Assembly (NCBI GenBank): GCA_013265495.1
Contig: MU059546.1
Location: forward strand, 496,001 to 560,000
Direction of reading: 5' to 3'
Source: Vicugna vicugna
Taxonomy: Eukaryota
DNA length: 64,000 nucleotides
The number at the start of each line of letters is the position of its first letter. Position 1 is the first letter of the stretch. Made by a program: the position numbers and the translations under genes. Below, one piece after another: positions 9,054-62,569 of the stretch. Under the pieces are notes generated by a model, which worked only from the letters and a program-made list of their open reading frames with translations, was not told the DNA's origin and made no database searches.

Positions 9054-9059
9054 TTTATT
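9054..9059 (-). terminator. GPX4: GPX4 polyadenylation signal AATAAA
   Basis: TTTATT on + strand, about 195 nt after the stop codon and downstream of the SECIS. Confidence 0.85.
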
Positions 9060-9120
9060 CTGACAAAGCAGCTGGGGGTAGGGGGTTGCCGAGCTGCGAG
9101 CTGGGCCGAGGGGCCTTCCT

Positions 9121-9196
9121 CCGGCAGGGGTGCACGCCGGGTTCTCAGGTCTGCCCCACCAGGGCTGGTTTTCGGGCAGACCGTCACGGGTGCCGG
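9121..9196 (-). promoter_or_regulatory. GPX4: SECIS element (form 2) in the GPX4 3' UTR
   Basis: RNA reads CCGGCACCC-GUGAC-GGUCUGCC-CG-AAAA-CCAGCCCUGG-UGG-GGCAGACC-UGAG-...-CCGG. It has the UGAN/NGAN non-Watson-Crick core, a perfect 8-bp GGUCUGCC/GGCAGACC helix, an unpaired AAAA and an apical mini-stem. Confidence 0.93.
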
Positions 9197-9253
9197 GTGG
9201 AAGGCTCCAAGGGGCACGGGCAGCAGGCTCGGGTAGGGGCGCACCTTGTGGAA

Positions 9254-11369
9254 CTAGAGGTAGCACGGCAGGTCCTTCTCAATTACCTGCAGGGAAGGAA
9301 GGGTCAGGGCACCTCTTCCCGTGCCCCCTCCCCACCCCCCGCAGCAGGCTCCCTCGAAAGGCACCTACCAGGGGCTCCTCCATGGGACCATACCGCTTCA
9401 CCACGCAGCCGTTCTTGTCAATGAGGAACTGCCAGAGAGGCGGTGTCAGTACCGGGAGGCCCGCAGGGCTGGGGCGAGCAAGCAGCCCCCACCGCCACCC
9501 CACTTAGGTCACAGCTGGGGACCCTTGAAGTGGCCCAGTTGTGGCTGGGGGCTGGGTCGCCCCCCTAGGCCTCCAGTCCCCCTTACCTTGGTGAAGTTCC
9601 ATTTGATGGCACTACAAAAGAAGTGTGGTGTCTGAGGAATCCCGTGGCAACTGCAGACCCCCCCTGCGCCGGGGCGCCACCCTGCCCTCCCTTCTCCCCT
9701 TGCCCCTGCTCACTTTCCCAGGACGCCCTTCCCCTTGGGCTGAACTTTCATCCACTTCCACAGCGGGTGGGCATCATCCCCATTAACACAGATCTTGCTG
9801 AACAAATCGAATTTGACGTTATAGCCGGCGGCGAACTCTTTGATCTCAGCATTGCTCCCTGGCTCCTGTGGCAGGACAGGGTGCGGGCTGAGTGGGCAGG
9901 AGCCTGCACCCCTCTGGCCCCTGCTCCAGAAGACAGGCCCTCGCCCGCGCCTCCACCTCCGCCCACAGGACGAACGGGGCCCCCAGAGCCACACACCTGC
10001 CTCCCGAACTGGTTGCAAGGGAAGGCGAGGATCCGTAAACCACACTCGGCGTACCGCGCGTGCAGATCGACCAGCTGAGTGTAGTTCACGCGCGTCTTGC
10101 CTCATTGCGAGGCCACGTTGGTGACGATGCACACGTGGCCCCTGGTGGGACGAAGGAGCCAGGTCAGGGCCAAGGCCTCTGCCTGCCTCCCCCGTCAGGC
10201 CGACTAGCACCCACCGGTACTTGTCCAGGTGAACCACGTGACCGTCGATGTCCTCGGCTGAGAATTCGTGCATGGAGTGAGCACAGCGCCAGTCGTCGCG
10301 AGCCGCGCACTGCAACGGAAGGGCGTGCTGAGCGGACTGCGGGCCCGGGGTGCCAGGCCCTGGTGCGGGTCCACCTGGCCCACTCGCTCAGCCCGCCCAG
10401 CCAGGGCTGCCAAAGGGAGGACAACTGGGGCACCGGGGCAAGGAAAGAGTGAGGCGGCTCCTCCTCAAAGCTGGGGCGGGACAGGGCGCATTTGGCCCAA
10501 GACATAACAGAGCCGGGAAGGGCTTGGGACCCTGCTAGGCGGGTGTGGAGACCCCGCGCGCACCGGGTTCTGGGACTCGGCGCCGCAGGAGCTCTCCCCG
10601 GCCACAGGCCCCCCCTGCCCAGAGTTCTCAGGCGCGGGCCTCTCCCGCCTGCGGCGCGCCCTCCTGCGACGGCACACTCGAGCCCCCCGCCTCCGGGGGG
10701 CTCGGCGCCGCCGCCCGGCTGGCAACCGGCGCCGCTGCCCGCGACGACCCGGGGAGCCGGCGGCTGCGCGGCCCATGCCCGCCCGTTCCTGGCCGCTCCT
10801 GTGCCCACCGAGGGCCGCGCCAGGAGGACAAAGAGCCAGTAGCCAAGGGCGCCGGGCCGCTGCTCTGTGACGCCAACGAGCGGGGCCCCGGGAGGCGCAG
10901 GGCGGGGGAGGGGCAGTGACACCCCGAGGCGCGTGATCCCGGATTTTCCGGCCATCCGGCGCCCTCGCTCCCCCGGCAGCAGGCGGGTCGCTAGTGGCCG
11001 ACGACGCCACCCTCAGCTGCCCTGAAGCAGCAGCGTCTGCGCGTCAGGGGCGCCCACCCGGGGGTTCCGACCGCCTAGCCCTAACCCGGCCTCCCGGGAG
11101 CCGCCCCCAGTCCCCGATCTAGACTCAGTAACCCAGGCCCGCGCGCTAGCCACCGCTCCGACCGCCGCGGAGGGGGCGGCCGAGTACTGCTCGCGCGCCC
11201 CCAGCCAGCGCCGCCAGCCCAAGGTCCCCGCAGCTCCGCGCGCCCGCCCAACGGCCCGCCAGCCAGCCGGCGGCGCCCCGCTCACCATGGTGCTGGCCAA
11301 GCCAGGTGCGGCCAGAGCCCCGCAGAGGAGCGCTGGCTTCAGGAGGCGGCACAGGCGGCTGAAGCTCAT
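9254..11369 (-). CDS. GPX4: Phospholipid hydroperoxide glutathione peroxidase 4 (selenoprotein, 197 aa mitochondrial form; cytosolic ATG at 11288). complement(join(9254..9286,9369..9428,9587..9611,9714..9865,9997..10141,10215..10309,11286..11369))
   Basis: Exons of 84+95+145+152+25+60+33 nt give 594 nt. In-frame TGA (Sec) at 10102-10104 in NVASQUGKT; FPCNQFG and IKWNFTKF motifs; 27-aa leader [27 protein letters not shown]; SECIS downstream. Confidence 0.98.
10564..10776 (-). CDS. GPX4: GPX4 alternative exon 1b (sperm-nuclear isoform, Arg-rich 71-aa N-terminus)
   Basis: ATG at 10776 reads [47 protein letters not shown]...SQNP. The phase-0 donor GTGCGC at 10563 matches the phase of exon 2, and the sequence resembles the known nuclear GPX4 N-terminus. 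Confidence 0.88.
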
Positions 11370-11620
11370 CGCGGCTGCAGGGGCGCCTGGAAGGCAGCGC
11401 TCCTCCCCTCGCCGAGCCGACCAATGGACGCGCGCCGGCGAGCCTTGCCTCCCCGCCCTTGGCCACGCCCATCGGCTATCCCATTGGTCGGCTGCTCAGG
11501 CGCTGCAGACTCGTGCCAGCGCTAGCCAATGGGAGGTCAGGATGAAGGACTGACGGGGGCGGGGTTGGGGCCGGCCTGCGATTTTGTCGCTATCGGTGAC
11601 TGCGCATGCCCGTCGACGGG
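11370..11620 (-). promoter_or_regulatory. GPX4: GPX4 CpG-island promoter
   Basis: Three CCAAT/ATTGG boxes (11421, 11483, 11526), GC box GGGGCGGGG at 11556-11564, no TATA box. CpG-dense from about 10200 to 12100. Confidence 0.75.
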
Positions 11621-38898: not shown

Positions 38899-41800
38899 TC
38901 AGAGCACCGTCACGGCCATGCTGGGGTCATCGAGGGACCGGGTGATGAGCTTGGGGCGCTGCCAGCCTGGCACAGGGTCCTCTTCTGCCTCCTGTTCCTC
39001 CTCCTCCTCCTTCCCCTGATCCTTGGAGAAGTACAGGAATACCTAGTGGTGGGTGGCCCAAGAAAACAGGAGGGGAAGTCAGCTTGAGGGCCCCCAGCCC
39101 CACCCTTACCCCCAGCCCAGTCCTGGCGCTGCAGTCACCTCCTCTAGCGTGGTCTGGCTTACAGAGAAGTCCTCCACGCCATGCTCCGCCCCGTGAGCCG
39201 CCAGCTCTCCAAAGACGCGCGCCAGGGCGCAGCGCCCTCCCGGCGGCAGCTGGAAGCGCAGGCGGCCGCCGTGTGCCTCCCGCAGCTCGGCCTCCGGGAA
39301 CGCCGCTGCCACGAAGGCTGCCGCTGACTCAGACCGCGACAAGGGCACCCGCAGGGTCAGCGTGTGGCCAGCCCCGAATCTGGGGTGGGGTGGGGTGGGC
39401 GGGGCCAGAGCTACAAGGCCCGCCCACAGCCCACTCTTCCCTACAACCAGCCCACAGCACCCTCCTGCTTTCCTCTGGCCCCATCCCTATCCCCAGCTCC
39501 TCTAGACCCCTATCCAACACACGTGACCCCAACCCCTGCTTGTCCTTGCCCCACCCGCATGCTCGTTTCTTGTCTAACTTTGGTTTCCCCTAGGCCCCGC
39601 CCACATAAGGCCGCGCCCCGCCCACTCGCCAGGCCACGCCCACCCGCCAGACCCTCTTTGGCCTCTGCCCTGGCCTCTTGCACCCTCACCCATCAGACCT
39701 CATCCCCATCTTGGTCCAGTCTCGCCCTCTCAGTCATCTCTCCCGGACAGCCCATAATTTTTGCCTCTTCCCCACAGAGCCAAGATGGCCCCGCGTGGTC
39801 TCTCCTCCGGCTCCTCCTACAAGCCCCACGCTTACCTGCCCCAAGCCCGGTCCTGGAGGGCTGCCCCCGCTCACCTGCCCTTGAGGTGCTGCGTGCTGCC
39901 CAGGCAGCGGAACCTCCCGTTCACCATGACGGCGAGGCGCGTGCAGAGGGCCTCACACTCCTCCATGCTGCAGGAGCCCAGCGCCGTGAGCTCCAGCCTG
40001 GCCTGGACCAGCCACGCCCGGTGCTGTGCTGCCCCTGCCGGGATCCTCACCCGCCACCTCTAGACCACCCTGTGCTCGCGGGTAGTTCCTGTCGGGCCCA
40101 GACTGCTGTGTTTCCGGGGCCGGGTACCAACCCCTTGTGTCCTCCGAATCAGGCCGGGCACCCTCCCCCAAGGGCAGGACCACCCCATCCCTTGTGACCC
40201 CGTGCTCTGACACCCTCTCGCTGGGGCCTGGTCCACCTTTCTTCCCAGGCCGGGGCACCTGGACCCGCAGCCCTGGGCATCCAGTCTGGGGCCCACCTGT
40301 GCGAGGTGAGCACCACGGAGCGGCCCTCCTGCACCACAGCCAGGAGGCTGTTCCAGAGGAAGCGCCGGGCACTGGGGTCCATGCCGGTGGTCGGCTCATC
40401 CTGGGAGGGGAGAGATGTTTAAGCCCCGCCCCACCGGCCCCGACCCCGCCTCTGCCTAGGCCCCGCCCACACGCACCAGAAAGACCACAGCCGGGTCCCC
40501 CACCAGAGCCAGGGCTGTCGCCAGCTTCCGCTTGTTGCCACTGCTATAGGTGCCCGCGGGCCGGTCCGCATACTGAAGGAGCCCCAGGCGCTCCAGGCCC
40601 AAGCTTGCTGTCTGTGGTGGGCCAGAGTGAGAGTTGGGGGCCAGGGTGAGACGGGCCAGAGTGTGCCTGGGGGATGCCACGATGAGCCTGGTGGGGGCCA
40701 CAGCGAGGGCTGGGCAGGAAGGTAGTGAGAGCAAGTGGGCACAGAGTGAGGGCGGAGTGAGCACAGGGGTCCAGAGTGAGCGGAAGGGGCCAGGGAGAGG
40801 ATGGGGGTGTGGAAGGTAAATAAAGGGGGTGGGGCCAGAGCGCATACGGAGTGAGGACAGAGCGGGAATGCCACGTGGGCGTGGGGCCGGAGTACAGGAG
40901 AGGCAGGACTTGGCCCAGGGACAGAAGGCACCACCGCCAGGAAGCGCAAGCTGGACGGGAGTCCCGTGAGAGTGGGCGGGCTGGAGCCTGGAGGGTCAAG
41001 GAGGAAAGGGGCGGGTCCCTAAGCAGAGAGGGGGCAGATGCAGCCTGCAAGACTGTGGGAAGGGGAGGTGAACCGAAATGACTGTGTAGGAGCTGGGGAA
41101 GGAGCAGGGGGAGAGCTGGGGGAAGGGCAGGGGCAGAGGACCAGGTGTGGGTGGACCTGGGCTCTGGGTGTGGTCAAGGAGAAGGCAGATAAGCTGTGAT
41201 GCGGGGCGGAGGCAGGGGAGAGATGGTTGGGTGGGGGCTGGAGGGCTTGTTGGGGGGTGGTCACCTGGGCAACCTGGGCCTCGGGGACCCCGCGCAGGCG
41301 TGCAAACAGCTCCAGGTGCTCACGGCCTGTCAGCAGCTCGAAGATGGCATCAGACTGAGGGCAGTAGCCCATGTGGCGGTTAGCTGCAGCTGGTTCCTGG
41401 GTCACGCTGGGGACGGGGGGGGGGGGCACAGGTAGCTCAGGTAACTGGCTAGGCCTCGGCCATGCAGGGGCAAACAAGGGTCTCAGGGCCCAGCCACCCT
41501 GGTAAAGGACGGGGTGTCTCAGGGCCGAGTCCATGGGCAAGGGTGTGGGGGTCAGGCACTCAGGCCAGCCCGAGAGGACCATGCTGGGGAGGTAGTGGCC
41601 ATGCGCGGGAAAGGGTGGTGGGGAGGAACAAGGGCTCTGGGCTGGGGCTGCTCACCTGTGGCCCGCCAGCGTGGCCTCACCCCCGCTGGGCAGCGTGTCC
41701 CCCGTCACCATGCGGAAGGTGGACGTCTTCCCCGCTCCATTCACACCCAGCAGTCCAAAACACTGCAGGCACACCCACAGGTGGCGCTCAGTGAGGCCTC

Positions 41801-44800
41801 AGACCCTTGCCCCAGCGCCTCTGATTTCTGGGGTAGCTTTCTCAGTTCCACAGGGACCCCTGGGGCAGATACTGGGTGTGAAGGCAGACGTAAAGCTGCC
41901 ACTCGGCAGGAATGTGGCTGGCACACGGCACGTGCTGAATCCATCCGGGCACACAGGAGCTTTCTGAATGTCTCCGGCCACGCGTGGGGTGCCTGATAGC
42001 AATGGTGCCCAGAGAGAATTCAGGCTGGGTGCAAGTCAGCCTGAGGTGGAGAGGTTGGCTACACACAGTAGGCACTCGACACAGTGACTACAACTGACAC
42101 TAACACGCCACATGTGTCCATGGGTGTGTGCCAGCCCCCAGAAGGTGGCCAGTAAATGGCCCACAGCAGGTAAGTCTGCACAAAGTAATTGCTTGAATGT
42201 GAATCAATACAAAGCAGGTGCCGACTAGATACTGGCTGTCAGCAGTGCTCAGACATACACAGTAGGAGTTCAGTAAATACTGTTGGTGCTTGATAAAAAG
42301 TTGACCATCACAAAGGTGACATTCAGTACACTTTGGGTGCACACAAGGGGGCTCAACAATGCTTTAACATATACACTTCATAGTCAGTAAACGCTGATAC
42401 ACAGTAGGTGCTTGATTAATATAAACGGCATGTATGTGGGAGCCCAACAAGTGCTCAACCATTAATTTGTCCTCAGTAGGCTTGTTCTAATACCTGATAG
42501 CACACAGTAGGGGTCAATAAATGTAAGCATGCAGTAGGTGCTTAATGAGAATTTGTTGGCTCAAAATTGAAGCTCAAGTGTCGACAGCCAGTAAGTGCTC
42601 AATAAAGAGCAGCAGGTGCACAGTAGGTGTTCAGTAGAGGGAGATAAGCACAAACACGGTAAGGGGCGGGGGGTGCACAGTAGGGCAGCCTCTCAGCCCT
42701 GGACCAGAACCTCCACCCTGGACCTACCTCGCCAGGGGGGATCCCCAGGCACAGGCGGTTGACAGCCAGTGTCCTCTGCCCACGGTACACCTGGGAAGGG
42801 CACAGGTCCATGAGAATGGGGAGTGGGCCAGAGGGAGCCCCCCAAGCCCGCACTCTGCACCCACCTTGGTCAGGTCCCTCAGCACCAACACATCCCCCTG
42901 GGTATCCCCCAGCATGACCCGTTCCCGCTCACGGGCCACATCTTCATCCTCCTCTCCCAGGGGAGGCAGAGGCTTCAGCCTGGGTCTGAGAACAGAGAGA
43001 CATGAGTGAGCCCAGAGCCAGACCCCAGCCCGCACCACCCTCCCTGGTCCAGACTGACTGTGGCAGGAGGCGGTTGCGATGCTGCAGCAGGAGCGTGAAG
43101 AGGAGGAAGATGGGCCCCTGTACCACCATGGCCAAGAGGTTCTTGCCAACCACCTCCCAGCGCAGGGGTGACTGGAACTGCCCATCTCCTGTGGGGATAG
43201 GAAGGAGGGATTGGGTCATTTTGGGGGTCTTGGGATCTGGGTCCCTCTCTGTTTGGGTTATTTTGGGTTCTTTTTGTTTGTTTTTAATGCTTTTGTGTGT
43301 GGAGGAGATAATTAGGTTTATTTATTTGGTGGAGGTACTAGGAATTGAACCCTGGACCTCATGCATGCTAGGCAAGCACTGTACCACTGAGCTGTACCCT
43401 CCCCTCAACGTTGGGTTCTTAAGGGAAAGGACCAATAACTGAATAGGCCACTCAACTGGGGTCTAATTGGCATAGAAAATAGTGGCATTATCATCTCCCT
43501 TATTTAGGGCCTCAGACCTCTCGTGATGTGACCAAGATGGAATTGACTTTTACGGCTGCTTTGCTGCACCTCTAACTTGGTCCACCAGTTCTTGGGGCCA
43601 CCTAAGACCTTCAGTTCTCTTCCTGGGGGCTGTCATTTGTCCTTGCCTGTAGAATTGATGGCTAGAGGGAAGTTCTCACCCAAGCGCTCAAAGGCGTCAG
43701 CCATGGCCTGGTTCCGCACCATGTCAATGAGCCCCCGGCCCAGGCAGAAGTGGGGAAAGATAAGGAAGACCCGTTTCAGGATCTGGCTCACCTCCTGCAA
43801 TTTCTGCTCAAGGGCAGAAAGAAGGAGATAAGTCAGGGGCTGAGGCTGATGCCCCCATCCAACTCCAGCCCAAGGCCCAGGCTTGTGGTGCCCTTACCTG
43901 ATCAGAGAAGAGCTCAAGCACAAAAGTGGCCATGCTGCCATTGGTGCCAATAAAGAGGTTGATGCAGGTGAGCACCACGTAGGCCGTGCTGGGCACGGAG
44001 AAGAAGAAGGAGGCTGGGTACATGAGCGGTGTGATCGACCAGCTGAAGGGTAACAGGAGTTGCTCTTACTGCCCAGACAGGGTGCTGAGCAGCCCTGAGA
44101 GGAATACAGATCTCCCCTCCCAAATTCTGTGTTGTAGACTCCTGTGATGCGGGCCAGAACAAGATGAGCTTTTAAGGCCACCTCAGCACACCGCTGAACT
44201 AGATCACACTTGGGGTCAACTCAGACCTCCAAATCCTCCCCTTAGGAGTTGCTACAGAGTCCCATCTCCCTCAACAGTATTAGGTGGTAGGGGGTATCAA
44301 TAAGAACAAGCCCTGAGGGGCTGGGGGCCTCACCCATACAGTAGTAGCAAGAGCAGGAGGGCAGGCAGGTTGGCAGGGGCCACATACGCCCTCTGCTGGA
44401 AGGCCAGAAAAATGAGGACCACAATGCACGCTGGCACCAAGTAGTTACACTGCATTGGAGATGGCAGTTACACCCCTCAGTGTGCAGGGGCAGAAACTGG
44501 CATCCTCAGCACTGTACTCCCCCCACCCCCTGACCTCCCTGTGCTTTGGGTAGCAGGACATGAGGTCTCCCACAATCCCCAAGATTTCACTTGGGCCATC
44601 CTAGACATGATCTGCCCAGCAGGGGCAATGGCAAGTGGTGACTGGGGCCCCACCCCTCCAGGCAGACACCGCACCATGTCCCAGACAAAGTTGCTGAGCC
44701 AGTAGAGGGTTGGGGGCAGGCCACCCATGCACTGCAGGTGTTTGGCTCGGGTGACACGCTCGTCGATGAGGACAAGGGTGAAGCTGGCTGGGACGAAGGA

Positions 44801-47800
44801 CATAGCAAAGACCACGCAGATGGAGACAAGCACGTCCACTGAGGAGGCCATCCTGGGGGCGAGGGTAAATGAGCAGCTCAGAGCGGAACTGGGCATGCCA
44901 CAAATGGGACAGAGGTCCCCACGGCTGGGCATGGGTGGGGGATGGGGCCTGAGCCATTTCAGGTCGTTGGCCAGGGAGAGGTTGTGCAGGTCTCTCGTCG
45001 GATAGAGGTTGATGTGACAAGGATGTGCAGGCTGTTGGAGGAGACTGGAGCCTCATGCTGTCCCATTACCCTGGCCTAGGGAGTGCAGAGGGGCCGTTCC
45101 TGACCCCCATTTACAGAGCAGGAGTGTGGCAGAGCATAAATCCAACTCCTACTGCCCAAAACACCAGAAAAACGGAGGCGGGGGGACACACAGGGCAGAG
45201 GGACTCACAGCGCAGCCTCGGACAGCTGCTCCTTGGTGAGGTTCAGTGGATGGTTGATGGTGATAATGCTGTGGGCTTGACGGGTGGGGCCTGGTGGCCG
45301 ACGGGCATGTAGGAGAGCATTGTTGGCTCGGTTGACAAAGGCCACCATCGCGTGCCAGCCCTTGTTGTTGAACCATATCTGGGGTGGGGTCAGAGTGGAG
45401 GGGTCAGTGTGGGGGTCAGACCTGTCCCCAACAGCATCTGCCTGCTACCCGCTCCGTTCCCACCTTGAGGCTGTCCTGGGTGTCCAGACTGAGAGCCCAT
45501 GCTGTGAGGTTGTTCAGGATGCGGTCGAGGGCCCCGCCAGGTTGGGGACTCAGCAGGGCCCGCAGCTCCTCCACAGAGCGACCCACCTCAAGCCCTGAGG
45601 GTAGGCCCGGGTCTCGGCCCCCCAGCGAGAAGCCCCCATACCTGTGGAGCAGTGGAGGCAGGAGGGGCGGCTGAGGGCCTGGGCAGATGGGGCAGCAGAG
45701 TCTCCCAGCGGGCAGGCAGAGGGCACAGGAGGGAACCCGGGCGGGGACACTCCTCACCTGACCTCATTCACCCACTTCTTAGTTTTCAGGCTGTTGGCAG
45801 AGACAGACAGAGAGGTGACTGAGATGAAGAGACAGAGATGTGGGGGAGTCAGTGAGATAGACGAAAAGGGTGAGGAGTGGAGGGTACTCGGGAGGCCCCA
45901 GCCCAGAGCCCCAAGCCGGGCATCCACCTCTGACCCCCCCAGACCAGACCACCTCCTCCACCCGAGGACCCATGCTATAGCCAGGCACGCTGAGTCCAGG
46001 GCGGCGGCTCACCCCTGGCGCACTAGGCCCGGGTAGGTCTTGACCAGGAAGTCAGACAGATTCCGGCCGGTTAGGTTCTGGACCACTTCGCCCGAGCTGC
46101 TTGGCGCCTGGGGTGGCGGGGGACCACCGGCCCCTGAGGGACAGTCGGGCAGCAGGCGGCGGGCGCCAGGCCGGCTACACTGGCAGGCTGGGGACGGAGA
46201 CTCTGGCGTCCAGTTGCCCCTGGCCAAGACTTCAGCCACATCCGCAGGAACCTCGGGCACCGAGAACTGGCCGACGGCGGGCGGGGTGCACTTGGGCGCC
46301 CTACAGGGGCAGGGGCGGGGAGGGGTGGGGCTGGGCTGGGGTATCCGGCTTCCTGGGCTCCTCGAATGTGGACGCGCCCAGCTCCCAAGCAGGCACGGGG
46401 GTGCCCCCGGCACCCGCACCCACGGGGGCCCAGCGGCCAGAGTCCAGATAGTGAAACCGAGGCCAGAGAGGAGCAGGGTTCAGGCTTGGCAGGCCCTCAC
46501 CTGGCGGAGTTATTTCCCTCCAATCCGGCCTCCTCCAGCAGTGCCTCAAGCAGATGGGCACGTTCAGGGTCACCTGGGGCATCCTCGCTGCATGGAGTGG
46601 GGGTGCTGGGTCAGGGCTGCACCCGTAGGCCCCTGGCCCTCCCGCCACCAGCCCTCTCTCCTCTGCGCCCACCTGAAGAAGGACACCTGGGCACCGTACA
46701 TGCTGGGACTGAGCTGCAGAGGCGGGTAGTATCCAAAAGGAGGCACGACGAGGCTGAACGCCAGCGCAAGGCCCACAAAGAGGGCAGGCAGCACGATCTG
46801 AAGGACCAGCCCATCAGCTGTCCTCACCGTCTACCCTCCAAGCTTGCCTGCAGCCAGCCTCCCCAGATCCCGCTCTAGAACCATCCATGGCACCCCAGTG
46901 CTCTCAGTAAAAGTGTTCAGAGTGAGGGATATGCCTGGGATCAGGGGGCTGAATTAGGTCACAGAGTGGATTACAGGCCCCCAGGGTCCCCCACGCTGCC
47001 TCCCTGGTGCCCGGCCCCACTCACCTGTGCGAACAGGCCCCGGCGGCTGCGGTGGGCCAGCAGGAAGCGTTTGAGAAGCAAGGCCCGGAGCTGTTGGAGG
47101 GTCAGTGCCCAGCCCTGGACCCGGCCTGTGGCATCTGGCCCTGAGCTCTGCAGGGCCTGCATCTCTGGGGCAGATCCAGCTGTGGGGGGGGGTGGGAGGT
47201 CAATGCCCATGCCCTGATCAGGAGGGGATCAGGAGGGGCCACAGGGCTACAGGGTTGGGTGGGGACAACTCACCCAGCTCCCCATTCTCCAGGGTGGACC
47301 CATCGGGCAGAATCTTGAGCCGCGTGGTCACTTCCGGGTAATTCCTCAAGCACTGGAGCTGCCTGTGCTAACCATCTGTGGAGAAGGGGTCAGGGTCAGC
47401 GTTCAGCTGGGGTCTGGGTTTAGATCAAGGCTCACAGATGGAGGAGTCAGGAGTGAAGGATGTAGGTTGGGGCTATGCCTTGGGCCACGCTCAGCCAGGG
47501 ATGGGGACTTGGTCTAAAGTCAGGTCCAACTCTGGACCAGGGTCAGGGGCCTGGGACATGGACCTGTGGCTGCATTCTCTGGGCCTGTGTCTGTAGCACA
47601 GTCCTCTACCACCTTCAGGAAGATCTGGGGAGACAAAGCAGGGGGCTCAGAGCCTGGAGACACACAGGAGAGAGGGGGACTCAAGAGCCACCCAGCCCTC
47701 ATTGGTGGGGGTCCCCAGGCCTCCCCAAGGGACTCTGGGCCTCCAGGCCCCTGCGTGTGCCCTGCCTCCTCCCGTGGATGCCCAGCTGTCAACAAGCGGA

Positions 47801-50800
47801 CTCCTTCTCATCCTGCCAAGCGCCACCCCCTCCAAGCAGCTCACCTCCCACGCTGCCAAACCTCCCCCAGCAGCCTCACCTCCTCGAGGCTGGTGTCGGA
47901 GATCCCATAGCTGGCCAGCCCCAGCTTCCCCAGCTGCAGGTCCAGCTCACGGAAGAGCTCGGCGAAGCTGCCGTCCAGGGCACCCTTGTAGGGCAGTGCC
48001 AGCACCAGCTGGTGTGGCAGCTCCTCAACCAGCCGTGCCCCGGGCACCAGGCGCTGCACCAGGGCCAGCAGCTGGGGCACACCTGGGTGGGCAGTGGGGC
48101 ACGTGAGGGGCCCCGGAGGAGTGAAGTAGTCCCTGCTCCTGCCCCTCCCCCATCCTAGCCTCCCTGGGGAAGGGGCTTGGGTGCCCCGTGAGGAACCTGT
48201 CCCGAAAGGCAGAGAAGGTCAGGATTAAGCACCTGAGGGCAGGACCTGACCTGGACTCAGAGCCAGAGTCCACCCAGGGGCAGGGGTAGGTTTGTGTGTG
48301 GACTCAGCCCATGGTCAGGGGTCAGGGGTCCAGCCTGGGGTCAAAACCCTGTTGCCCTGAACCAAGTCACCGCCACCACCAGCCGCTCCCTCTGGCTCCT
48401 CCCTACCCCCTACCCTCACCGGCAGTGCTGTCATGGCTGCCCAGCTCCCCTTCCCTCCTGGTATCCTTCAAGTCAGTGTCACCCTGTGGACAGAGGAGCA
48501 CCAACTGCCATGGCCATCAGGTCTGGACAGAGCCTTGAGGGTCAGTGGTCAGAGGTCAGCCCTCACCTTTTTGCTGGCGGCCAGAGGTGGGGGACCCTTC
48601 ACCAGCGTCAGGTAGTATCCGGAGCCCAAGTGACGCCGCAAGAAGAGTGGGGAGCCACAGCAGCACAGGCGGCCGGCTGCCACTATTGCCACACGGTCTC
48701 CCAACAGCTCAGCCTCATCCAGGTGGTGGGTGGAAAGGATCAGTGTGCGACCTGGGCATGGGACCCAATCCGCACATACCACCCCGGCTGCAAGGCCTCT
48801 GCCAGGAATTGCCTGCCCCATGTGGTAAACTCCTCCTCACCCCTCAAAACCCCATCTCCAGCACCTTCTCATCAGAAACATCTTCTGGCTCCTCAAGCAG
48901 AATCCAGGGGAACCTCAGGCCACCCCCAACTCTTACCTTCACGGTATTTGAGCAGCAGCTCCCAAATGCTGCGACGGGAAGCAGGGTCCACACCAGCCGT
49001 GGGCTCGTCCAGGATAACGACTTGGGAGCCACCCACAAAGGCAATGGCCACTGAAAGCTTCCGCTGTGTCCCGCCTGGGTTGGGACAGGGGTGGGGTCTT
49101 GCATGACCCTGCCCCCCAGCCTCGGGCAGGGCTGCCTCCCTCCTCCCTGCCCCTTTCCCTACCCACCTGGGCCCCCAGATACCCGTCTCCTGGCTTCCCA
49201 CCGCCCTGGGGATAAAGTCCCAGCCCCTCCCCCCAGCCTCACCTCCACAGACCCAGAGGCTCCCCACCAGGCTGGGCTCACCAGAGAGGTGGCGCGTCTG
49301 TGTGTGCCGCTTGGGGATGAGCCCCACGTCCTGAAGCAGACGGTCCTGCTCAGGGCCCACGGCAGCTGCGCTCAGACCCTTCAACCGCCCGTAGAACCAG
49401 ACATGCTCATCCACAGTCAGCCTGAGGCCACAGGCGGAAAACAGGGTGGCCACCATGGCTGGCAGGGCCCCAGAGAACACCCAGCCCCTCCCATTGCCGC
49501 CCCCGGGGCCCACTGTGACGCACATGTCAAACAGCACGTTGTACTGTGGGCAAATGCCCAGGTGGGGCCGGATAGCTGCCATGCCGGACCGGACGTCATG
49601 GCCCAGGACACAGGCAGAGCCAGAAGTGGGTGGGAAAAGGCCGCTCAGGATGGACCTGGGGGTGCACAGGTCTCAGAACAGCTGCTCCTTCAGAGGGGAA
49701 AACCGAGGCTCCCAGAGAGGAGAGACCAGCACTTATAGGGTGCCAACTGTATGCCCATACCAAAGGGGTGTTACATCCCCATTTTACAGGAGACGGAAAA
49801 TGAGGCTCAAAGAAAGCACTTGTCGCCTGCCAATTGTGTGTCCAAAGTGAACTGGGGTCCCACCCTCACTGTACAGAAAGGAAACTTCCGACCCCAGATG
49901 ACCCCTGGGAAGGGAGGGGAGTGCAGGCTGCTCACAGAGTAGTGGTCTTGCCCGCTCCGTTGTGGCCCAGGAAGGCGGTGATGTGGCCCTGGTAGAAGTC
50001 CAGGCTGAGCCCCCGCAGGGCTGGCTGCGGGTTGCCAGGAAAGCGCTTTTCTAGGCCCCGTATGGAGACCCCGGGAACCAGGCCATGTGGTGCCTCCTCC
50101 ACCAGCACTGCAGAGGGAAGGTACAGTCAGCCATGGGAGCTCTTGGGGGTCTGGGAACCCTTAAAACTGGTCTGCGGAGTCGGGGACTTCTCGGGCTGGG
50201 GTCTGTAGGAGTTCGGGTAGCCCCAGGGGACCTGGGGAACTAGGGGGTGTCCAGAGGATCGGGATCTGTGGGAACCACGGTTTTGGGGGGGCCAGGGAAG
50301 TGGCTGCTAATGTTTGTCAGGCCTCACCCTGTGGGTCTTGCGGGGCAGGGGGCGGGGCGGGACCCTTGGGGGGCTGAGGGCCAATCCAGTAGCTCCTCTG
50401 AAAGGGAAAGTTCCATGGTTCGGGAATCCCGTACTGGCCTGTGGGAAATGGTGCTCAGTTACCCCTCGAGCCCACCCTCCTGCAGTGTGCCAGCTTCTGG
50501 CCACACACCTGGGATTAGGCCATCCAGGTAGGAGGTAACCAGGAAGTCCCATCCGCCTGCCCCAGGCTGTCCCTCCACGCAGCCACCAGTGTGCATGTGC
50601 AGAGGGGCAAGGAAGCCCCACCCACTCAGCTAGACCCGCCTCCAGGTACCAAAGGCCTTTCAGCCCCGCCCCACCCAGGGTCCCGCCCCTCAGCCAGCCT
50701 CCCTTGTGCTGGTGTCCCTCCTACAGCCCACCTGGGCACACGGCCTCCAGGTACCAGGTGGCGAGGCCGTAGAGAGTGGCATCGAGCAGCAGAAGGCCCG

Positions 50801-53692
50801 AAACCTGGGCCAGGCTGAAGACGTCGTCCGTAGGCGCAGTGCCCATGTTGTGCCACTGCGCGCCCTCACCCTGCTCCTCCAGCAGCGCGAGGCTCTCGCA
50901 GCCGAAGCCAAAGGCCACAGGTGACAGAAGGCTCTGCGGGTTGGGGTAGGGAGGTGGCTGGGTCAGCGAGCAAGGGCAACTGGGGGGGTTCAGCACCCCG
51001 GCACCCACCCGGCTCGGCTCTTACCGCGGCGACGCGGCCGCCCACCGGCAGCTGGTCCCGCCAGGCCACGCACAGCACGTAGGGCAGGTAGAGCACGAAG
51101 TAGGCGAGGCCGCCGCAGGCGGCCGCCAGGTTGGCGCGGGAGAAGAAGGCGCTCAGCAAGAAACTCTGGACCACCGTGGCCACGGCGAAAGCCGCCAAGA
51201 ACAGGAAGAGCACAACAGGGTGGCTGTAGGGGAGGATGTCCCCAAGCTGCGGGAGTCAAAGGGAGCTTGAGAGGGTGCTGGGATTGGCCCAGTGACACAC
51301 GACAGCGGGAGGCGCCCCCTGCCTGTTACCCTCCCACGTGCAGCACACACATTCTGGAGCCAGGCAGGCCCGGGTGCGCCCACCTTGAGCACGGCCACGA
51401 GCAACGCGGTGCTGAGAAGGAAGGGCCCGAGGCAGCTGAGGAACCAGCCCAGCCACAGCACAGCGCCACTGAGCCCCATGGCGCGCATCGTGTGGCGCAG
51501 CCGCGTCTCCTTCTCGCACACCACAGCCTTCACAGTCAGCGCCACCGAGTAGATCCAGGCCAGCGTCAGGAAGAGCGGCAGTGAGCGGCTCAGCACTCGC
51601 AGGAACCTGAGGCAGTGGGGCAGCTGGGGTGGAGGCCGAAGACCCCGTGCTGCCCCCATCAAGCACAATGGTTCCCGCCCCAGGGTCCCAAGGTGCAGCC
51701 AGCAAACATTTGCCCTCCCTTATCCTCGGACCCCTAATGGCCCCTCAGTGCTCCAGCTGCCAAGCCACCTTCTCGCTGTGTCCAGAGACCCCAGACCCTT
51801 AGGGATCCCTGCTCCTCCCATTACAGGTCACAGGAAATGGTCCCTCTAAACCAGTAGTTCTCAGCATTGACTGCATGGACATTCCAAAGGGAACACAGGC
51901 CCCACCCTGAGACCCGGGAATCTGGCATCTGGGTGAGTGAGTGAGGATGGGGTGCTCACGCATCATCCACATAGCAAGGGTAGGGCATCTGCTGCAGGTA
52001 GAGGCCGGCGCGGGGCGGGGCGCCGCTGAGCACGTGCACGGCGGCGCGCTCCACCATGTCCTGCAGGTACACGAAGCCGCCCCACACATAGCGCAGGTCT
52101 ATCAGGGGGTCAGCGGCGGGGCCAGGGTCCCAAAACCTGAGGGGAGCATGGTGGTGGGCTGGAGGGAGTGGCTGGGCCCTGCCCATCACACTTTTAGCTC
52201 CACTCTTATATGCCCGCTCAATTAAGCACCTAGCCCCAGCTGCTAGCGGCTCCCATCTTATCCCAGAAGCCAAAGTGTTGACCCCGCCTGCCACGCCCCC
52301 TCACGCATCATAGGCCCCTCCCACCACGGACCCCAGTTGGTCTAAGGAACCTCTGATAGGTGAGAAGCTCTCTGGTATCTCTAGACAATGGAGCCCCCGT
52401 CCTCTTGGCCCTGCCCCACAAGGCCCCCACCTGTCCCTTATCTTATTGGTTCTGGTTACGTCATCGATGTCCATACGGATCTTGATGCGCAAGGGACCAG
52501 GGCCTGGGAACTGCGTGCGGTCCGGGGAGTCCTCCGGCCCCAGGAAGACAATGCCGGCCCAGAAACGGTGCTGGGAGAGCAGTTCCAGGGCCCGCTCCAC
52601 CAGGGCGGCCTCTGAGGGCACAGCCTCCAGCTTGTCCAGGGTCACGCACTGCAGAGGGGCCTGGGTGTGGGTCTGAAGTCCCAGGGTCCTCCCCTGGACC
52701 TTGGGGCCAAGCCGTGCTTCCTGCTCAGAGCCCCAGAGTGGGGCCGACCCCTCCATCGGACCCCCACAGAGGGGCTGCCTCTCCGCTTAGAGATTTCCCC
52801 TACTAGACGGCCCCTCACCTCCATCACGCAGCCCAGCATGCCCACCAGATGTCCCATGTCAGCGTGGGCCTCCTGCCAGCTGTAGCCACCTCTGTGTGGG
52901 TTCAGAAAGGCACGGAGGGCCTCCACCTGGTCCCGGCCTCCAGGTCCTAGCTGCTTCCTTCTTTCGTCCCGGATTTGCAGGAGCTTCTGGGGGGTGTCGT
53001 GGAACGTGGGGGTCTGCATTGGGCATTCAGGGCCATTGCACCTCTTCCCATCCCTGGGGCCTGAGCTCACCATGGACACCACATCCCACCTCCACACTCT
53101 TGCCCATAAGGCCCTGCCCTTTGCCCAAGTCCTCCGCAGGGGGTGATGGGTATGAAGAGGTGGGGGTGAATCTGCCACCCTCCATCCCGGCCCCACCTGC
53201 AGCATGGCGACATTTGCACTGTCATTCATGAAGTTGAAGAGCTGGGGTCCCAGCAGCTCCCACACCTCCTGGACGTCCTTCAACACAGCCAGTTCCTGGA
53301 AGGTTCGGTTCACCTGTAGGAGGTGGGCGCTGAGGTCCATGCCGGCCTCGCCTGTTCATTGACACTTCCCTCCTCTGAGGACCCCTGCCCACCTCTCCCG
53401 CTCCCTCCACTCTGCTCCATCCCGTGCCTCTGAGCCCTAGCTCACGCCCATCCCTCTCCGCCCAGGGTAGGGGGGGGCTCTCTCCCCTGGGCTGAGGCAG
53501 AGATCAGGGGCCCCTCCCACCCTCACCTGGGCCATGAGCTGCCGGGTGAAGGGCGTATCAGGAGCAAACAGTACTTTCCCCAGGACCAGTGGCTTCAGGC
53601 GCCTCCAGAGCAGGCGGGACATGGGGTGGGTGTCCAGGGCCCCCATCAGCTTATTGCACGTGGAGCCTGGGGCGGGACACCATGAGGTCCTG

Positions 53693-53745
<53 letters not shown>

Positions 53746-55624
53746 CCCAGACTGGGAAACCAAGGTGGTCACTCACTCAGGCTGTCAACAGGTAGGGCCC
53801 TTGCCGGCTTCTGTCCCATGAGCTCCTTCAGGTCACTGGCCTCATACCAGTTGAGGGAGGGCCCCCCCGGTTTGCTAGGCCCCCTGGCACTGCAGAGGGC
53901 CTCTGACACCACTTCCAGGGGTCCAGTGGTCCTCTGGGGTCTCTGCAGCAGCACCTGCAGCTCCACCAGGCTGGGCAGCTCCAGGACCTGGAGGTGGGTC
54001 ACCAGAGGGTCCTGGCTGTCTTCGCTTCCACGTGGCTCCCCTACCACGCCTTCACCAGGGCAAGGGACTCTGCCGGAAGAACCCTCTCCCTCTCTTTCTG
54101 CTTGTGTTTCCCCAAACCTACAGAGGGTAGGTGCATGGGGCTGCCCACCGTCCGGGCGGCCACAGTTCCAGTTTCCTGGCTGGGGTCGAGGATGCATAGG
54201 CCTCTTACCTCCTGGGCCAGGTCCTCTGCTGCCTCCACAAAGCTGCCCATGGACTCCGGGGCTTGGCCCAGCACAGACCCCAGGGATTCCTGGAGAGAAA
54301 GATGACAAGGAGTCAACGACATTCAGTGACATCTCACAAGGAGAGGCTTAGCCAAGTTTCCACGGGGTCAGTACTTTCAGAGACCCCATTTTACAAACAG
54401 GGAAACTGAGGCTCTAAGAAGCACATGATCTGTTCAAGGTCTCAGAGCTGGAGTCTTCACCAGCATGCCAGACGTGGCTTGTCTGGGCACGGATCGGACA
54501 AGGAACATCACACTGGGCACCAGGGACAGTCCAGGACAAGGCCTGAAGGCTGGAATCAGAGGTCCCAGAAGGAGGTGCCTGGTCCAGGACGGGCAGCGCC
54601 GAGGCCCCATGAGAGCAGCGTCCCACCCCACCTCACCCCTCGCAGCAGTGTCCTCAGCAGCTCAGTGGCCAGGGGTGGTCCCTCCTTGGGCTGGTCACTC
54701 GGCTGAGGCCAGGCTGAGGGAGTAAGGCACAGAAGCAGAGGGTTAGGGAAGCTTAACCTGAGACCCACCCCCAACCTGCTGCCTGTTTCACAATCAGGCG
54801 GAGGCTCAGTGCTCAGCCCTGCCTGCCCCCAGGCTCCTGCCTTCTCACCTGCCCTAGCTCGGTGAGCTGCCCTCAGCATGGGCATGAGCTTCCTCAGGCT
54901 GGCCAGCATCCTTTGGGCACTGGGGCCCCCCAGGACACTATGGGCATCTGCCAGGAAGCGGGAGACCCTGGGGACAGAGAGAGAGAGCGGGAGGCGGTGG
55001 CCAATGGGCACCCCCTCACCCCGCCGCTCCCACAGCATCTTACTTACAGGGAATCCTTGAAGTTGCTGACGACTCCAGGCTCCTCTCCAGGCGTGGGCCA
55101 CGGGAAGCAGGTGTTGTTCACGTTGCAGATGAGGCCCTGGAGCCAAGGAATGGTGCCCGCTGAAGGCAGCGGCTTGTTGGGGAAGTGGCCTGTGGGGACA
55201 CCGGATGTTGGGGCTCCTGTCCGAGTCCCCATCGTGATTACGCCCCCCGCGACAGAGCGCTCACTCTCAGCCATTATTTGAGTGCCTGATCTGTGCTCCT
55301 AACGCTCACTGGGGGCCCTGTGGATAGGGTGACCATTGCCCCCTGCCTCCCAAAGTGCTGGACGCTGCGGGGGCTTACATTCATGCTGCTCGAGTGGGGG
55401 GTGGGAATGGCGTACGGCCACCAGGATGAAGAAGAGAAAGAGAGGCCACATCAACTCCACCAAGAGCTGGATCTGCGGGGGCAGAACAGGCGGGAGGAGT
55501 GGGGGGCTGTGGCGGGCGCCCTGGCCGCCCCGCCCTGGTTCACCCGACGGGGCTTTACCGGCTGTCTCCTGCGATACAGTAAATTCTTCCAAAGCAGCAG
55601 CATCAGCTGCGTCCAGAAGACCAT
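38899..55624 (-). CDS. ABCA7: ATP-binding cassette transporter A7; carries an in-frame TAG at 47368-47370 and an unresolved donor near 47576/47564. complement(join(38899..39042,39139..39379,39875..39967,40297..40400,40477..40611,41265..41406,41656..41762,42728..42790,42865..42985,43059..43188,43680..43803,43898..44042,44334..44449,44675..44852,45209..45378,45464..45641,45758..45790,46013..46300,46501..46587,46673..46797,47025..47179,47274..47375,47564..47624,47880..48082,48420..48483,48567..48751,48937..49074,49282..49421,49524..49655,49936..50107,50328..50438,50732..50933,51025..51246,51384..51606,51960..52136,52431..52648,52819..52986,53197..53313,53527..53666,53777..53987,54209..54289,54637..54713,54849..54967,55048..55189,55379..55472,55559..55624))
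   Basis: 46 coding exons, about 2147 aa. Starts [14 protein letters not shown]. Walker A motifs GHNGAGKT (49944-49967) and GVNGAGKT; Walker B/D-loop ILDEPTAG and FLDEPTTG; H-loops STHH and TSHS. Gene identity is secure; whether it is functional is not (see findings). Confidence 0.95.
42060..42690 (+). repeat. Degenerate array of the CACAGTAGGTGCTCAATAAA motif (L2/MIR tail-like)
   Basis: At least 8 recognisable copies, at about 42064, 42258, 42400, 42503, 42532, 42589, 42619 and 42676. Confidence 0.65.
43273..43404 (-). mobile_element. tRNA-Ala-derived SINE
   Basis: Minus strand reads GGGGAGGGTACAGCTCAGTGGTA...GGGTTCAATTCC...AAATAAATAAACCTAATT plus an A-rich tail. TTGGGTTCTT is repeated at 43263 and 43411. 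Confidence 0.85.
53693..53742. repeat. Compound microsatellite (CT)9(CA)16
   Basis: Read directly; lies inside the 110-nt ABCA7 intron 53667-53776. Confidence 0.95.
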
Positions 55625-58432: not shown

Positions 58433-59065
58433 TCCTTTGGTCCACAGTCGGTATTTCACATTATTTCTTGGTCCCAGGGCTCCTGGGCAGGGGCTGGTCC
58501 CTAGGAGGGCCTCCGGGTGGAGGTACCTGTGCAGCACTTGGTAGGGGAGTAAGGACGAGTTGGGGCGGCGTCTGGCTTTGCCTCAAACTTTCAGAGCTCA
58601 CTGTCATGTCTGGGCCTCGGTGTCCCCACGGGCCCCTGGGAGGGGCCAGCGTTGCTGGCCTGAGGGTCCTAGGGAAATTCAGTACTTTATGAGGCTTAAA
58701 ATATTTGGGGACTGTGGCCTGGCCTTCTCCTAGGGAACTTACTTCCTTCAGCACCCTCCACCATCCCCCACACTGTTCCCCTGAAAAAAAAAAGTACTTT
58801 CAAAACCGCCTGAAACTTTTATGGGTACAGAAACCACAAACTGATCAGCAGAGAAAAAAGAAGAGGGGAAGAAGTAACCGGAAACCATTTGGGGCCTGAA
58901 CCCCTTGGAGCCGGGGTTTCTTCCCCTCGGCAGCTGCCTGGCCCAAAGCCTGCTGGGAAACTGCTGCCCGGAGCACTCAGACATGTAGGAAAACAAGACA
59001 AAAACAGAAAAACCCGAAAACCCAGATGGGGCAACAGATGTGAGGAGATAGCCCGCCTGGGCACC

Positions 59066-62000
59066 TCAGTAGCCTGCCTCCTCCTGGTAGTAGGAGGGGT
59101 ACTCTGGGGCCTCCCCTGGGCCAGGGCAGTCACCGGCAGCCCCTGGAGCGCCATCGGCTGCTGGGCCTTGTGGGCAGTACTTGGGGTCGTATATCTGTCG
59201 GCCCAGGCCGAACACCTGGCCGCTCTGGTTGGCGCCCTGTGTGTAGCCCATCTGCAGGGACATGGAGGAATTGTCACATTTGTCTGTCCCCAGCTTGGTG
59301 TCATAGATGTGCCGCCGGGTCCCTGGAGCCGTCATGCCCACCTGGAGAGGGAGGAGAGGCATTAAGGAAGAAGAGGGGGAAACAGAGGCCCCGAAGGAGA
59401 ACTTCCCCCAAATTCCCACATCATTTCCCACCTCCCCGTATTTGCATTCACGGTGGAGACTACTACAGACCCTCCCAAGCCCTGGTCAGAACCCTCTCTT
59501 TTCTGACTCTGTGCTGAGTTGATCTCAATTACCAGTGACCCCCCCCTCCCTAAGGACCACAGTGTTTGGGCCCAGCTGTCCCTGCCAGCTAGGAGGCTGC
59601 TCAGGCTGGGGCTCAGGTCTTCCGGAGGCCATCAGTGATACTCAGTGATACACAGGAGGAAAAGTGACACTCGCAGGATCTAAACATATCAGAGTTGGAC
59701 GGGCTTTCAGGCAAAACCTTCAGGGAACCTGAGGCACGGAGCTGGGTAGTAACATCGCCAGGGACACACAGCAAGCTGAGGCAGAGACAGAGCAGGCAAG
59801 GGCACAGTGGGTAGGAGGGAAACCCAGAGTGGGGTTTTTCGCAACAGGGATGAGCCCTCGGAGTCTGGCGAGGAGGGGAGGCAGGTGGAGGTCTGGCGGG
59901 ACTGGGCGCAGCCCACCTGGCTGGCACACTTGTTCGTGCCCATCTGGAGGCTGATGGTTGAGTGGTCCATGGGTGGCAGGATATGGTTCTTGGGGTCGTA
60001 CAGATGCCTCCTGGTGCCGTAAGCCGTCATGCCCGACTGGCTGGCACATTTGTTGGTGCCCATCTGCAGGGAGGCAGGTGGGAGAGGTCAGATGGTCCCC
60101 GCCAGGCCACTAGACCCTGCCCCGAGCTTGAGGGGCTGCCGGGCTGCACAGGGCCTAGGTTGCACCAGAAGCCTGCCCACCAGGGGCCCCAGGGTGGAGC
60201 AGCCCGGCGCCCACCTGCAGCCCGATGACGCACTGGCCCGCCTTCATGGTGGCATCGTCGAAGTTCCGTTCCTGTTTCTCCGAGTATTTGACACCAATGT
60301 CTACACCACTCTGCAGCCCCTTTGTCTTAGCCTGCAGGGGAGGGGGACAGGAGTATCAGGGTGGGGCAGCCCGGTCCCTCAAGCCAGGTGCATGGTGTAT
60401 GAGCCCAGGCGAGGCCTAGGGGCTGGGCTGCAACCTGCCCCCTGCACCTGCCACCCAACCCCTTGGGCACCTCAGACTCAGCAGGTCCTGTGGCTCCCAC
60501 CTCCCCTCCCACGGCCATAGCGGCCCCAGCCTTCCAATTGCTCAGGCTAAGAATTTGGGGTCATCCTTGCCGCCTGTGTCTCTTACCTTTCTTCTGCCCT
60601 TCCCTGGCCACCCGTCCTGGCCTTGGGCACCGTCTCGCCGAAGGCCTGCCCTGGCTCCTCCCCGGTCTCTGCATCTCCACCGCCCACGGGGCAGCTACCA
60701 GAGGTTCCCAGAAACACTATTTGGAACCCAGTTCCCTGATGTGCAAACCTCCTCCTCAAGCCCGTGGCAGTTCCCTCCTCCTGAAGCACTGCTCTAACCC
60801 ACCCTGGTCACCAGACCCTGGTGCAAGCGTAACACTTGCTTCTCATAATGTATAATTTGTAAAACAAAGTTATTTGAAGCCCAAACCCTCATGTGGACTC
60901 TGGGAAATCATGAGGTGTCCAAGGAGGCTCATGGACTGTAACCAAGGTGGGGAGACCATGCCTGAGCAGGGCGGGGGTGGGGGCAGCTGGGAAGTCTCTG
61001 GACCTTCCAGTCAGTTTTGTTGTGAACCTAAAAATGCTCTAACATATGAGGGATTTTTTAATAAAAAAAATTTGTAGGGGGAGGGTATAGCTCAGTGGTA
61101 GAGCGCACGCTTAGCATGCACGAGGTCCTGGGTTCAATCCCCAGTATTTCCATTAAATAAATAAATAAACCTAATTACCCCCCCCACCAAAAAAAAAAAT
61201 TTTGTTCATGACCTGCCCAGAAAGGGGTGGACTGTGTCTACCTTGGTCACCCTCGAATCCAAAGTGTCTGGTGCCTTGTGGGTGCCCAAAAATCTTTCCA
61301 AAGTAAGAAATTAAGAGCATCTGTGGATCTCCGCCTGGCTTGCTGTGTGACTTTGGGCAGGTGGCTACCCCTCTCTGGGCCTCACCTTCCCAGCCAGGGC
61401 AAGAAGAGACACCTGCACCTGTGTCAGGTTCCCACTCTCAAACAGGTCGTTGGCCTCGAACAGATCCACGGGGTTCATGCCGTAGCTGACCATGGCCTTG
61501 ATGAAGTTGGAGAGGTTTTCTAGCTGGGAGGAGGCAGGAGAAGAGGGCGGTGAGGGGCCTCAGTCTGCCCACCTGTCAGGTGGGGCCCCCCAGCCCTGTC
61601 CTTGCTCCACCCGCCAGTCCCTCACCTGGTGCCAGTTCTGCATGGAGCGGTTGATCTTGGGGACTGAGCCTGGTTGCAGCTTATTCATGAGTCTGTGGGG
61701 GACACATGGGTGGGGGGACACGGGAACTTCCATCAGGGTTGGGGAACCACAGAGACCCAAGAGACTAATTCATGCCTTCCTGGCCAATCTCACTGCCTCT
61801 CTCTGGGCCTCAGTTTCCCCCCGCTGCAATCTAGTCTTCACCACCAAAGAAACAAAGGTGCCAAAGAGTGACAACCACCCAGGATGCAGCAAAGAGAGGC
61901 CTCCAGTCATGTTAGAGGCTCTCTTGAGAAAGGACAGGGGTAAGGATGCTCCCCATTAGTGATCCTGGACAAAGCAGTAACACAAGAAAAAGGAAGGGTG

Positions 62001-62237
62001 AGAAAGACCGGAGACTCTTGAAGGAAAAGCAAGAAGGTGTCACACAGCACGTGGAGCATGACCTCACTGTGCACAGCAGTCAGGGTGATGAGCACATGCA
62101 GACACACACACTCACGTGCATAAGATAAGCCCGTCCTTCAAACCCTTTTGGAAGTCGGGGCCTATGGAGAGGCCGGTGAGTCCCTCAATCCAGCTGCGGA
62201 GTTCCGCCTCCTTCTGAGGGTCATACTTGGACAGGAG
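59066..62237 (-). CDS. CNN2: Calponin 2, exons 2-7 (exon 1 lies beyond the window). complement(join(59066..59341,59917..60063,60215..60331,61386..61523,61626..61692,62116..62237))
   Basis: CH domain ([33 protein letters not shown]), three calponin repeats ([13 protein letters not shown] and related), acidic tail ending YYQEEAGY*. 867 nt in the window, phases consistent. Confidence 0.97.
61077..61200 (+). mobile_element. Young tRNA-Ala-derived SINE (camelid-type)
   Basis: Box A TAGCTCAGTGG at 61088, box B GGTTCAATCC at 61131, AAATAAATAAACCTAATT tail and polyA; near-TSD aaaaaaaattt(t)gt on both sides. Confidence 0.88.
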
Positions 62238-62569
62238 CTGGCGGGGCAGAGGGCACAGGGTTGGAGTAAACACACACCCAGCTGTTGCCTCATGAAGCTT
62301 CTGATGGGGTGGTGCCCATGGCTCCAGGTGAAGAAGAGACAGTGGGGCCTGGAAGTCCCCATACCACCCGAGCACACAACTCCCCTTTCCCATCAGCACA
62401 GATAAACCGCTCCGTATGTCCCACTGATCAACATCGGGGATAATCTAGTTCCAGTGGTGCCAAACCCCACACAGCAGCCAACACAAACCGTAAAGGATTT
62501 GCACCCCCCCTCCGCCATCTCCCTAATCTCCAGGCACTAGAGACACCGGCCCTTCTCTGTTTTGGTCTT

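Follow-up and report, generated by a model that had tools for sequence, protein, structure and literature searches.

A camelid ABCA7 gene that is complete except for one in-frame TAG raises the question whether this codon is real and, if so, whether the gene is disabled by it, rescued during mRNA maturation or on its way to being lost. The stop was pointed out in a sequence-only reading of the window (the whole stretch of 64,000 nucleotides analysed here).

The ABCA7 gene of the window

ABCA7 was rebuilt on the minus strand as a curated spliced model of 46 coding exons and 2147 codons (55624..38899), running from an ATG at 55624..55622 to a natural stop just below 38902. The model was obtained with our own dynamic-programming protein-to-genome aligner, which includes intron states, by comparison with fish and mammal ABCA proteins (the references being a cod ABCA protein and a partial mammalian model), and its poorly conserved parts were curated manually by open frame, phase and splice-site score. 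All 45 introns of the curated model displayed GT-AG borders and, against the fish reference, the aligner required no frameshift anywhere in the gene. A single internal stop was found in the 46 exons, which bears out the earlier claim that the 44 exons outside a two-exon segment around it are intact.

Among solved structures, human ABCA7 was the best match and ranked first for three exons, namely 48082..47880 (residues 1076-1141, E 2.5e-27, as against 9e-15 for ABCA1), 47179..47025 (residues 1194-1242, E 3e-18) and a third one (E 1.6e-19). The 2147-codon product also displayed the layout of a full transporter, with two TMD-NBD halves and with Walker A and signature motifs both in NBD1 (GHNGAGKTT and LSGGTQRKL) and in NBD2 (GVNGAGKTS and YSSGNKRKL). 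Minus-strand open frames recognised by eye contain what we take to be calponin-2-like (CNN2) peptides upstream of the gene (58900-62400) and GPX4-like peptides far downstream of it (8900-11500). The resulting order, CNN2 / ABCA7 / GPX4, is presumably that of human chromosome 19p13.3.

The signature of NBD2 displayed one substitution. Coding exon 42 carries AGT (Ser) at 40540-40542 (minus strand) in place of the first Gly of a motif that reads YSGGNKRKL in human ABCA7 and ABCA4, and this Gly is invariant in 47 aligned fish ABCA proteins. The equivalent of coding exon 42 is missing from L001, the only relative covering that part of the gene. Either serine is tolerated at this position in camelids or the haplotype carries a second function-relevant change.

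Intron 7 contains a perfect (CA)16.5 microsatellite (53711-53743), which lies some 45 nt before the acceptor (53666) of coding exon 8. No large tandem repeats were found anywhere in ABCA7. A run of 158 N, corresponding to an assembly gap or a masked stretch, lies at 5588-5745, far from the gene.

The stop and its exon

On the minus strand, the stop-bearing exon reads ccttctccacag|AT GGT TAG CAC AGG CAG ... GAG CTG G|gtgagt. It is coding exon 25 (47274..47375, 102 nt, phase 1-1), encoding the linker that joins the first regulatory domain to TMD2, and the TAG occupies 47368..47370 as codon 1157. It is preceded by coding exons 23 (47880..48082, 203 nt, ending in phase 0) and 24 (47564..47624, 61 nt, ending in phase 1 at the weak donor CAG|gtccat) and followed by coding exon 26 (47025..47179, 155 nt, entered in phase 1), all on the minus strand. 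Translation of 47373..47274 reads the TAG in frame and, since the exons on both sides match human ABCA7, this frame is fixed from either side. The sequence-only reading was thus right about the frame, and its description of a symmetric exon of 102 nt (phase 1-1), its codon number (about 1157) and its count of 21 downstream junctions were all reproduced by the 46-exon model, in which 21 exons and junctions follow the stop-bearing exon.

Aligned with human ABCA7, coding exon 25 covers residues 1159-1193 approximately, and the exon of a relative matches human residues 1164-1191. According to PMC5563332, the human donor mutation c.3577+1 belongs to intron 26. By position, this mutation and the residue alignment together make coding exon 25 the ortholog of human exon 26.

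The stop would remove TMD2 and NBD2, as had been proposed. According to the exon-junction rule, a stop elicits NMD when the last exon junction lies more than about 55 nt beyond it; the TAG is far upstream of that junction, in support of the NMD predicted earlier.

The donor of coding exon 24, CAG|gtccat (47555-47576), deserves a separate description. It was the weakest of the gene (1.9) on a crude, simple weight matrix of our own, which was used for all splice-site scores given here. Its CAG|gtcc was kept in five of the six mammals compared, the sixth (L009) displaying gc instead. Twelve nucleotides upstream, at the position of an earlier donor, the window reads AT, and L003 and L007 are likewise devoid of GT there. 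As far as these sequences go, L009 must use the earlier donor, and exon 24 appears to measure 49 nt or 61 nt depending on the lineage. Judged from the same comparison, the AT is not a lesion, since five of the six mammals possess the later donor and two of these also do without the earlier GT. AT-AC splicing from this AT (at +49) was considered and rejected because it leads into the wrong frame, with a TGA within ten codons.

Selection on the exon and downstream of it

Lineage-unique changes were counted in a four-species codon alignment. For the linker exon 25, nonsynonymous and synonymous changes numbered 7:2 in the window and 8:3, 6:3 and 6:3 in the other lineages, with omega about 1 in every one of them. 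This exon evolves almost neutrally and, omega being about 1 in all lineages, new stops would arise easily there.

Downstream of the stop, exons 26-33 (403 codons) displayed 19 nonsynonymous versus 33 synonymous unique changes on the window branch, and the corresponding omega of 0.20 was the lowest among the four lineages. For exons 34-46, comparison of the window with L001 alone gave an omega of 0.30, a value probably inflated by sequence errors in L001. Both values indicate purifying selection downstream of the stop, a point that the sequence-only reading had left to a dN/dS comparison. To judge from these rates, selection has maintained ABCA7 over nearly the entire camelid branch. Such downstream selection implies that the gene is not an old pseudogene, and that the stop either arose very recently, is bypassed or does not exist.

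Exon 25 words in sequencing runs

The shares of sampled words (k-mers) held by sequencing runs were considered for 46900-48200 (133 words) and for exon 25 (5 words). Two genome-size runs of the same organism, X15 and X16, held 0.98 and 0.90 of the 133 words, respectively, and all exon 25 words (1.00 each). Three other genome-size runs of that organism (X17-X19) held 0.86 each of the 133 words, and 14 RNA runs (X1-X14) held 0.18-0.27; neither of these sets was listed among the holders of exon 25 words. Four small, transcriptome-size runs (X25-X28) held 0.60 each (3/5) of the exon 25 words and were not listed for the 133 words. By our own arithmetic, all exon-internal words represent 0.315 of the stretch, and 0.26 when exon 25 is left aside. 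The best RNA runs (0.27 observed versus 0.26 expected) thus held essentially every exon word bar those of exon 25.

By our estimate, the TAG itself has a chance of only about 44% of being covered by any of the five sampled words. Since a single base change would hardly remove five scattered words, the pattern was read as the presence of several exon 25 haplotypes; k-mer shares, as distinct from reads, suggest at least two, and probably three, of them among animals bearing the same label. On the same k-mer shares, the RNA came either from non-reference alleles (the stop allele being lost to NMD in carriers) or from transcripts devoid of exon 25, and RNA runs without the reference exon 25 words fit a segregating allele or exon skipping equally.

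A proposed young nonsense allele

A single stop in an intact 46-exon model, combined with the low omega downstream of it, favours a young nonsense allele. The TAG of the assembly would be a real change on the assembled haplotype, leading to NMD and to a truncated half-transporter with at most minor skipping; we adopt this reading tentatively and rate its chances as not quite even. Owing to its strong splice sites, exon 25 would be included in the mRNA, and translation would end after 1156 residues comprising TMD1, ECD1, NBD1 and the first regulatory domain. The 21 downstream junctions would then expose the transcript to degradation by NMD. In a small share of the transcripts, the symmetric exon may be skipped in frame, and the transporter would then be short of 34 poorly conserved linker residues. 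The missing exon 25 words in RNA would be accounted for by NMD loss of the reference allele or by animals without that allele. Such an allele would be polymorphic, and the TAG is most likely a segregating ABCA7 loss-of-function allele in this camelid. The sequence-only reading had also named a recent or segregating null allele, as well as a consensus error.

Stop alleles of human ABCA7 are the closest known system. They are tolerated in carriers and their NMD is incomplete (De Roeck et al. 2017, PMC5563332). In the same study, exons 11, 30 and 31, when carrying a stop, were skipped in frame at 2-8%, and up to 30%; for human exon 26, the only event reported there is the donor mutation with intron retention. 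This tolerance in carriers, with partial NMD and skipping, was counted in favour of a young allele. Like the human alleles, the camelid stop is a nonsense change in ABCA7 located a long way before the last junction, and its exon is again symmetric; it differs from them by the species and by the exon affected (the ortholog of human exon 26).

Origin of the codon and the case for an assembly error

Genomic contigs of non-camelid mammals, L001 to L009, were used as comparators. L001 (NCBI GCA_002738545.1) is 81% identical over 1.3 kb, L002 and L003-L006 are about 72% identical and L007-L009 76-79%. In all four comparators that span the whole exon, the equivalent of exon 25 is open, with 105 nt and phase 1-1. 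At the position of the TAG they read AGG, CGC, GGC and AGC, i.e. the codon site is, on this sample, variable across mammals. TAG differs from each of these codons at two or three positions, so that reaching it takes no fewer than two mutational steps, or else two small indels (+1/-1). The indel path is equally short: GGTAGCCAC becomes GGTTAGCAC by insertion of one T and deletion of one C four bases on, a change that could correspond to a complex mutation or to a pair of small assembly errors. A homopolymer error of one T alone was rejected as the cause of the TAG, since reading then runs into TGA.

Were the change an assembly or consensus error, the animal would possess a sense codon and a normal ABCA7. 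Such an error would suit a gene that is otherwise perfect and under purifying selection, and the change itself is error-like: compared with GGTAGCCAC-type sequences (relative L008 reads GGCAGCCAC), GGTTAGCAC displays an extra T and a missing C, both in two-base runs, and the frame is unchanged. Yet runs X15 and X16 hold every sampled exon 25 word as assembled, producing a stop requires a specific change, and it would be unusual for two errors to compensate each other four bases apart. We regard an error as unlikely.

Some observations concern the comparators themselves and the searches. In L001, a one-base frame disruption occurs at 3682-3807 and beyond, in the exon orthologous to window exon 27, and its stored gene model P0015 (983 aa) includes retained introns and a portion of NBD2 translated in the wrong frame; L001 is a poor reference, not to be used on its own for rate estimates. 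Searches for homologous proteins returned only exon-size open frames of other mammals (a mixed-alignment query gave only fish proteins), and a search of representative proteins yielded fragments together with a single 983-aa model of poor quality. Scanning metagenomes for patterns taken from exon 25 produced no matches. In the literature, no paper relevantly tying ABCA7 to camelids or alpaca was found, and the cryo-EM paper PMC9890230 makes no statement on whether the linker is resolved.

Bypass of the stop by splicing, readthrough or editing

The acceptor of exon 25 scored 10.8 (rank 42 of 45, counted from the weakest) and its donor 8.5, an average value. The AGs inside the exon scored -2.3, 1.5, -1.1 and -1.5, against 10.8 for the real acceptor. 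The sequence-only reading had envisaged the TAG itself or internal CAGs as new acceptors; this rescue had to be abandoned, given such poor scores and the wrong phase, three of these sites needing a phase-0 donor upstream for which only weak candidates are present. Its other suggestion, skipping of exon 25, stands as far as the frame is concerned: the exon is entered and left in phase 1, and exon 24 joined to exon 26 stays in frame. From the splice signals and phases, skipping would be the only plausible splice rescue, although it is not predicted by the strong splice signals of the exon.

Readthrough of the TAG was rejected because the codons that follow, CAC AGG, do not form a known readthrough context (the motif being CARYYA after the stop). 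A-to-I editing of UAG to UGG was also judged unlikely for want of an RNA duplex at the TAG: the 291 nt around it fold no better than shuffled sequence (z +0.75), and no inverted repeats covering it were found.

Skipping could nevertheless be constitutive, in which case the stop would be fixed and harmless, exon 24 would be spliced to exon 26 and a neutral linker exon would be in the course of being lost. Known cases of nonsense-associated or constitutive skipping share with this locus a symmetric exon (here of 102 nt, phase 1-1) that lies in an unconstrained linker and can be removed without a change of frame. An omega of about 1 in exon 25, with selection intact downstream, points in the same direction, as does the fact that none of the 14 RNA runs (0/14) holds the sampled exon 25 words, though nearly all other exon words are held. 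The locus departs from those cases by its strong splice sites, the acceptor being among the strongest in the gene on the crude matrix. Furthermore, four transcriptome-size runs hold 3/5 of the exon 25 words, the exon is open at 105 nt in four other mammals, and three genome-size runs are also without exon 25 words, so that sequence variation alone can explain the RNA result. Constitutive skipping is, on this evidence, improbable. A bolder alternative is that South American camelids have fixed the stop and splice exon 24 to exon 26, or else that the reference animal, a large and long-lived mammal, is homozygous for a natural ABCA7 knockout; we consider it quite improbable.

Possible gene loss

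The onset of gene loss, with an unrescued stop that is fixed or frequent and an ABCA7 that is becoming a pseudogene, would agree with the Ser that replaces the otherwise invariant first Gly of the NBD2 signature, but it is very improbable with a single disabling lesion over 6.4 kb of coding sequence, splice sites that are all intact, a downstream omega of 0.20-0.30 and a similar mismatch at sites invariant in 47 fish proteins upstream (22.7%) and downstream (26.2%) of the stop. As in unitary pseudogenes and lineage-specific losses, a disabling stop affects a gene that other mammals keep intact; unlike them, camelid ABCA7 displays a single lesion without any frameshift, and neither the several lesions nor the relaxed selection that characterise unitary pseudogenes were found.

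Significance

It is established that loss-of-function alleles of ABCA7 raise Alzheimer risk in people, and how far NMD escape and in-frame skipping soften the human alleles is a live question in that field. The meaning of the camelid TAG depends on its nature. If it were an assembly error, its value would be limited to an annotation correction. If exon 25 were skipped constitutively, the linker encoded by human exon 26 would be dispensable, and a fixed stop combined with skipping would represent a neutral linker exon of a conserved ABC transporter caught being lost via a nonsense mutation. If the TAG is instead the young nonsense allele favoured here, and provided that it is real, a natural ABCA7 stop allele in a large, long-lived animal would constitute a useful model.
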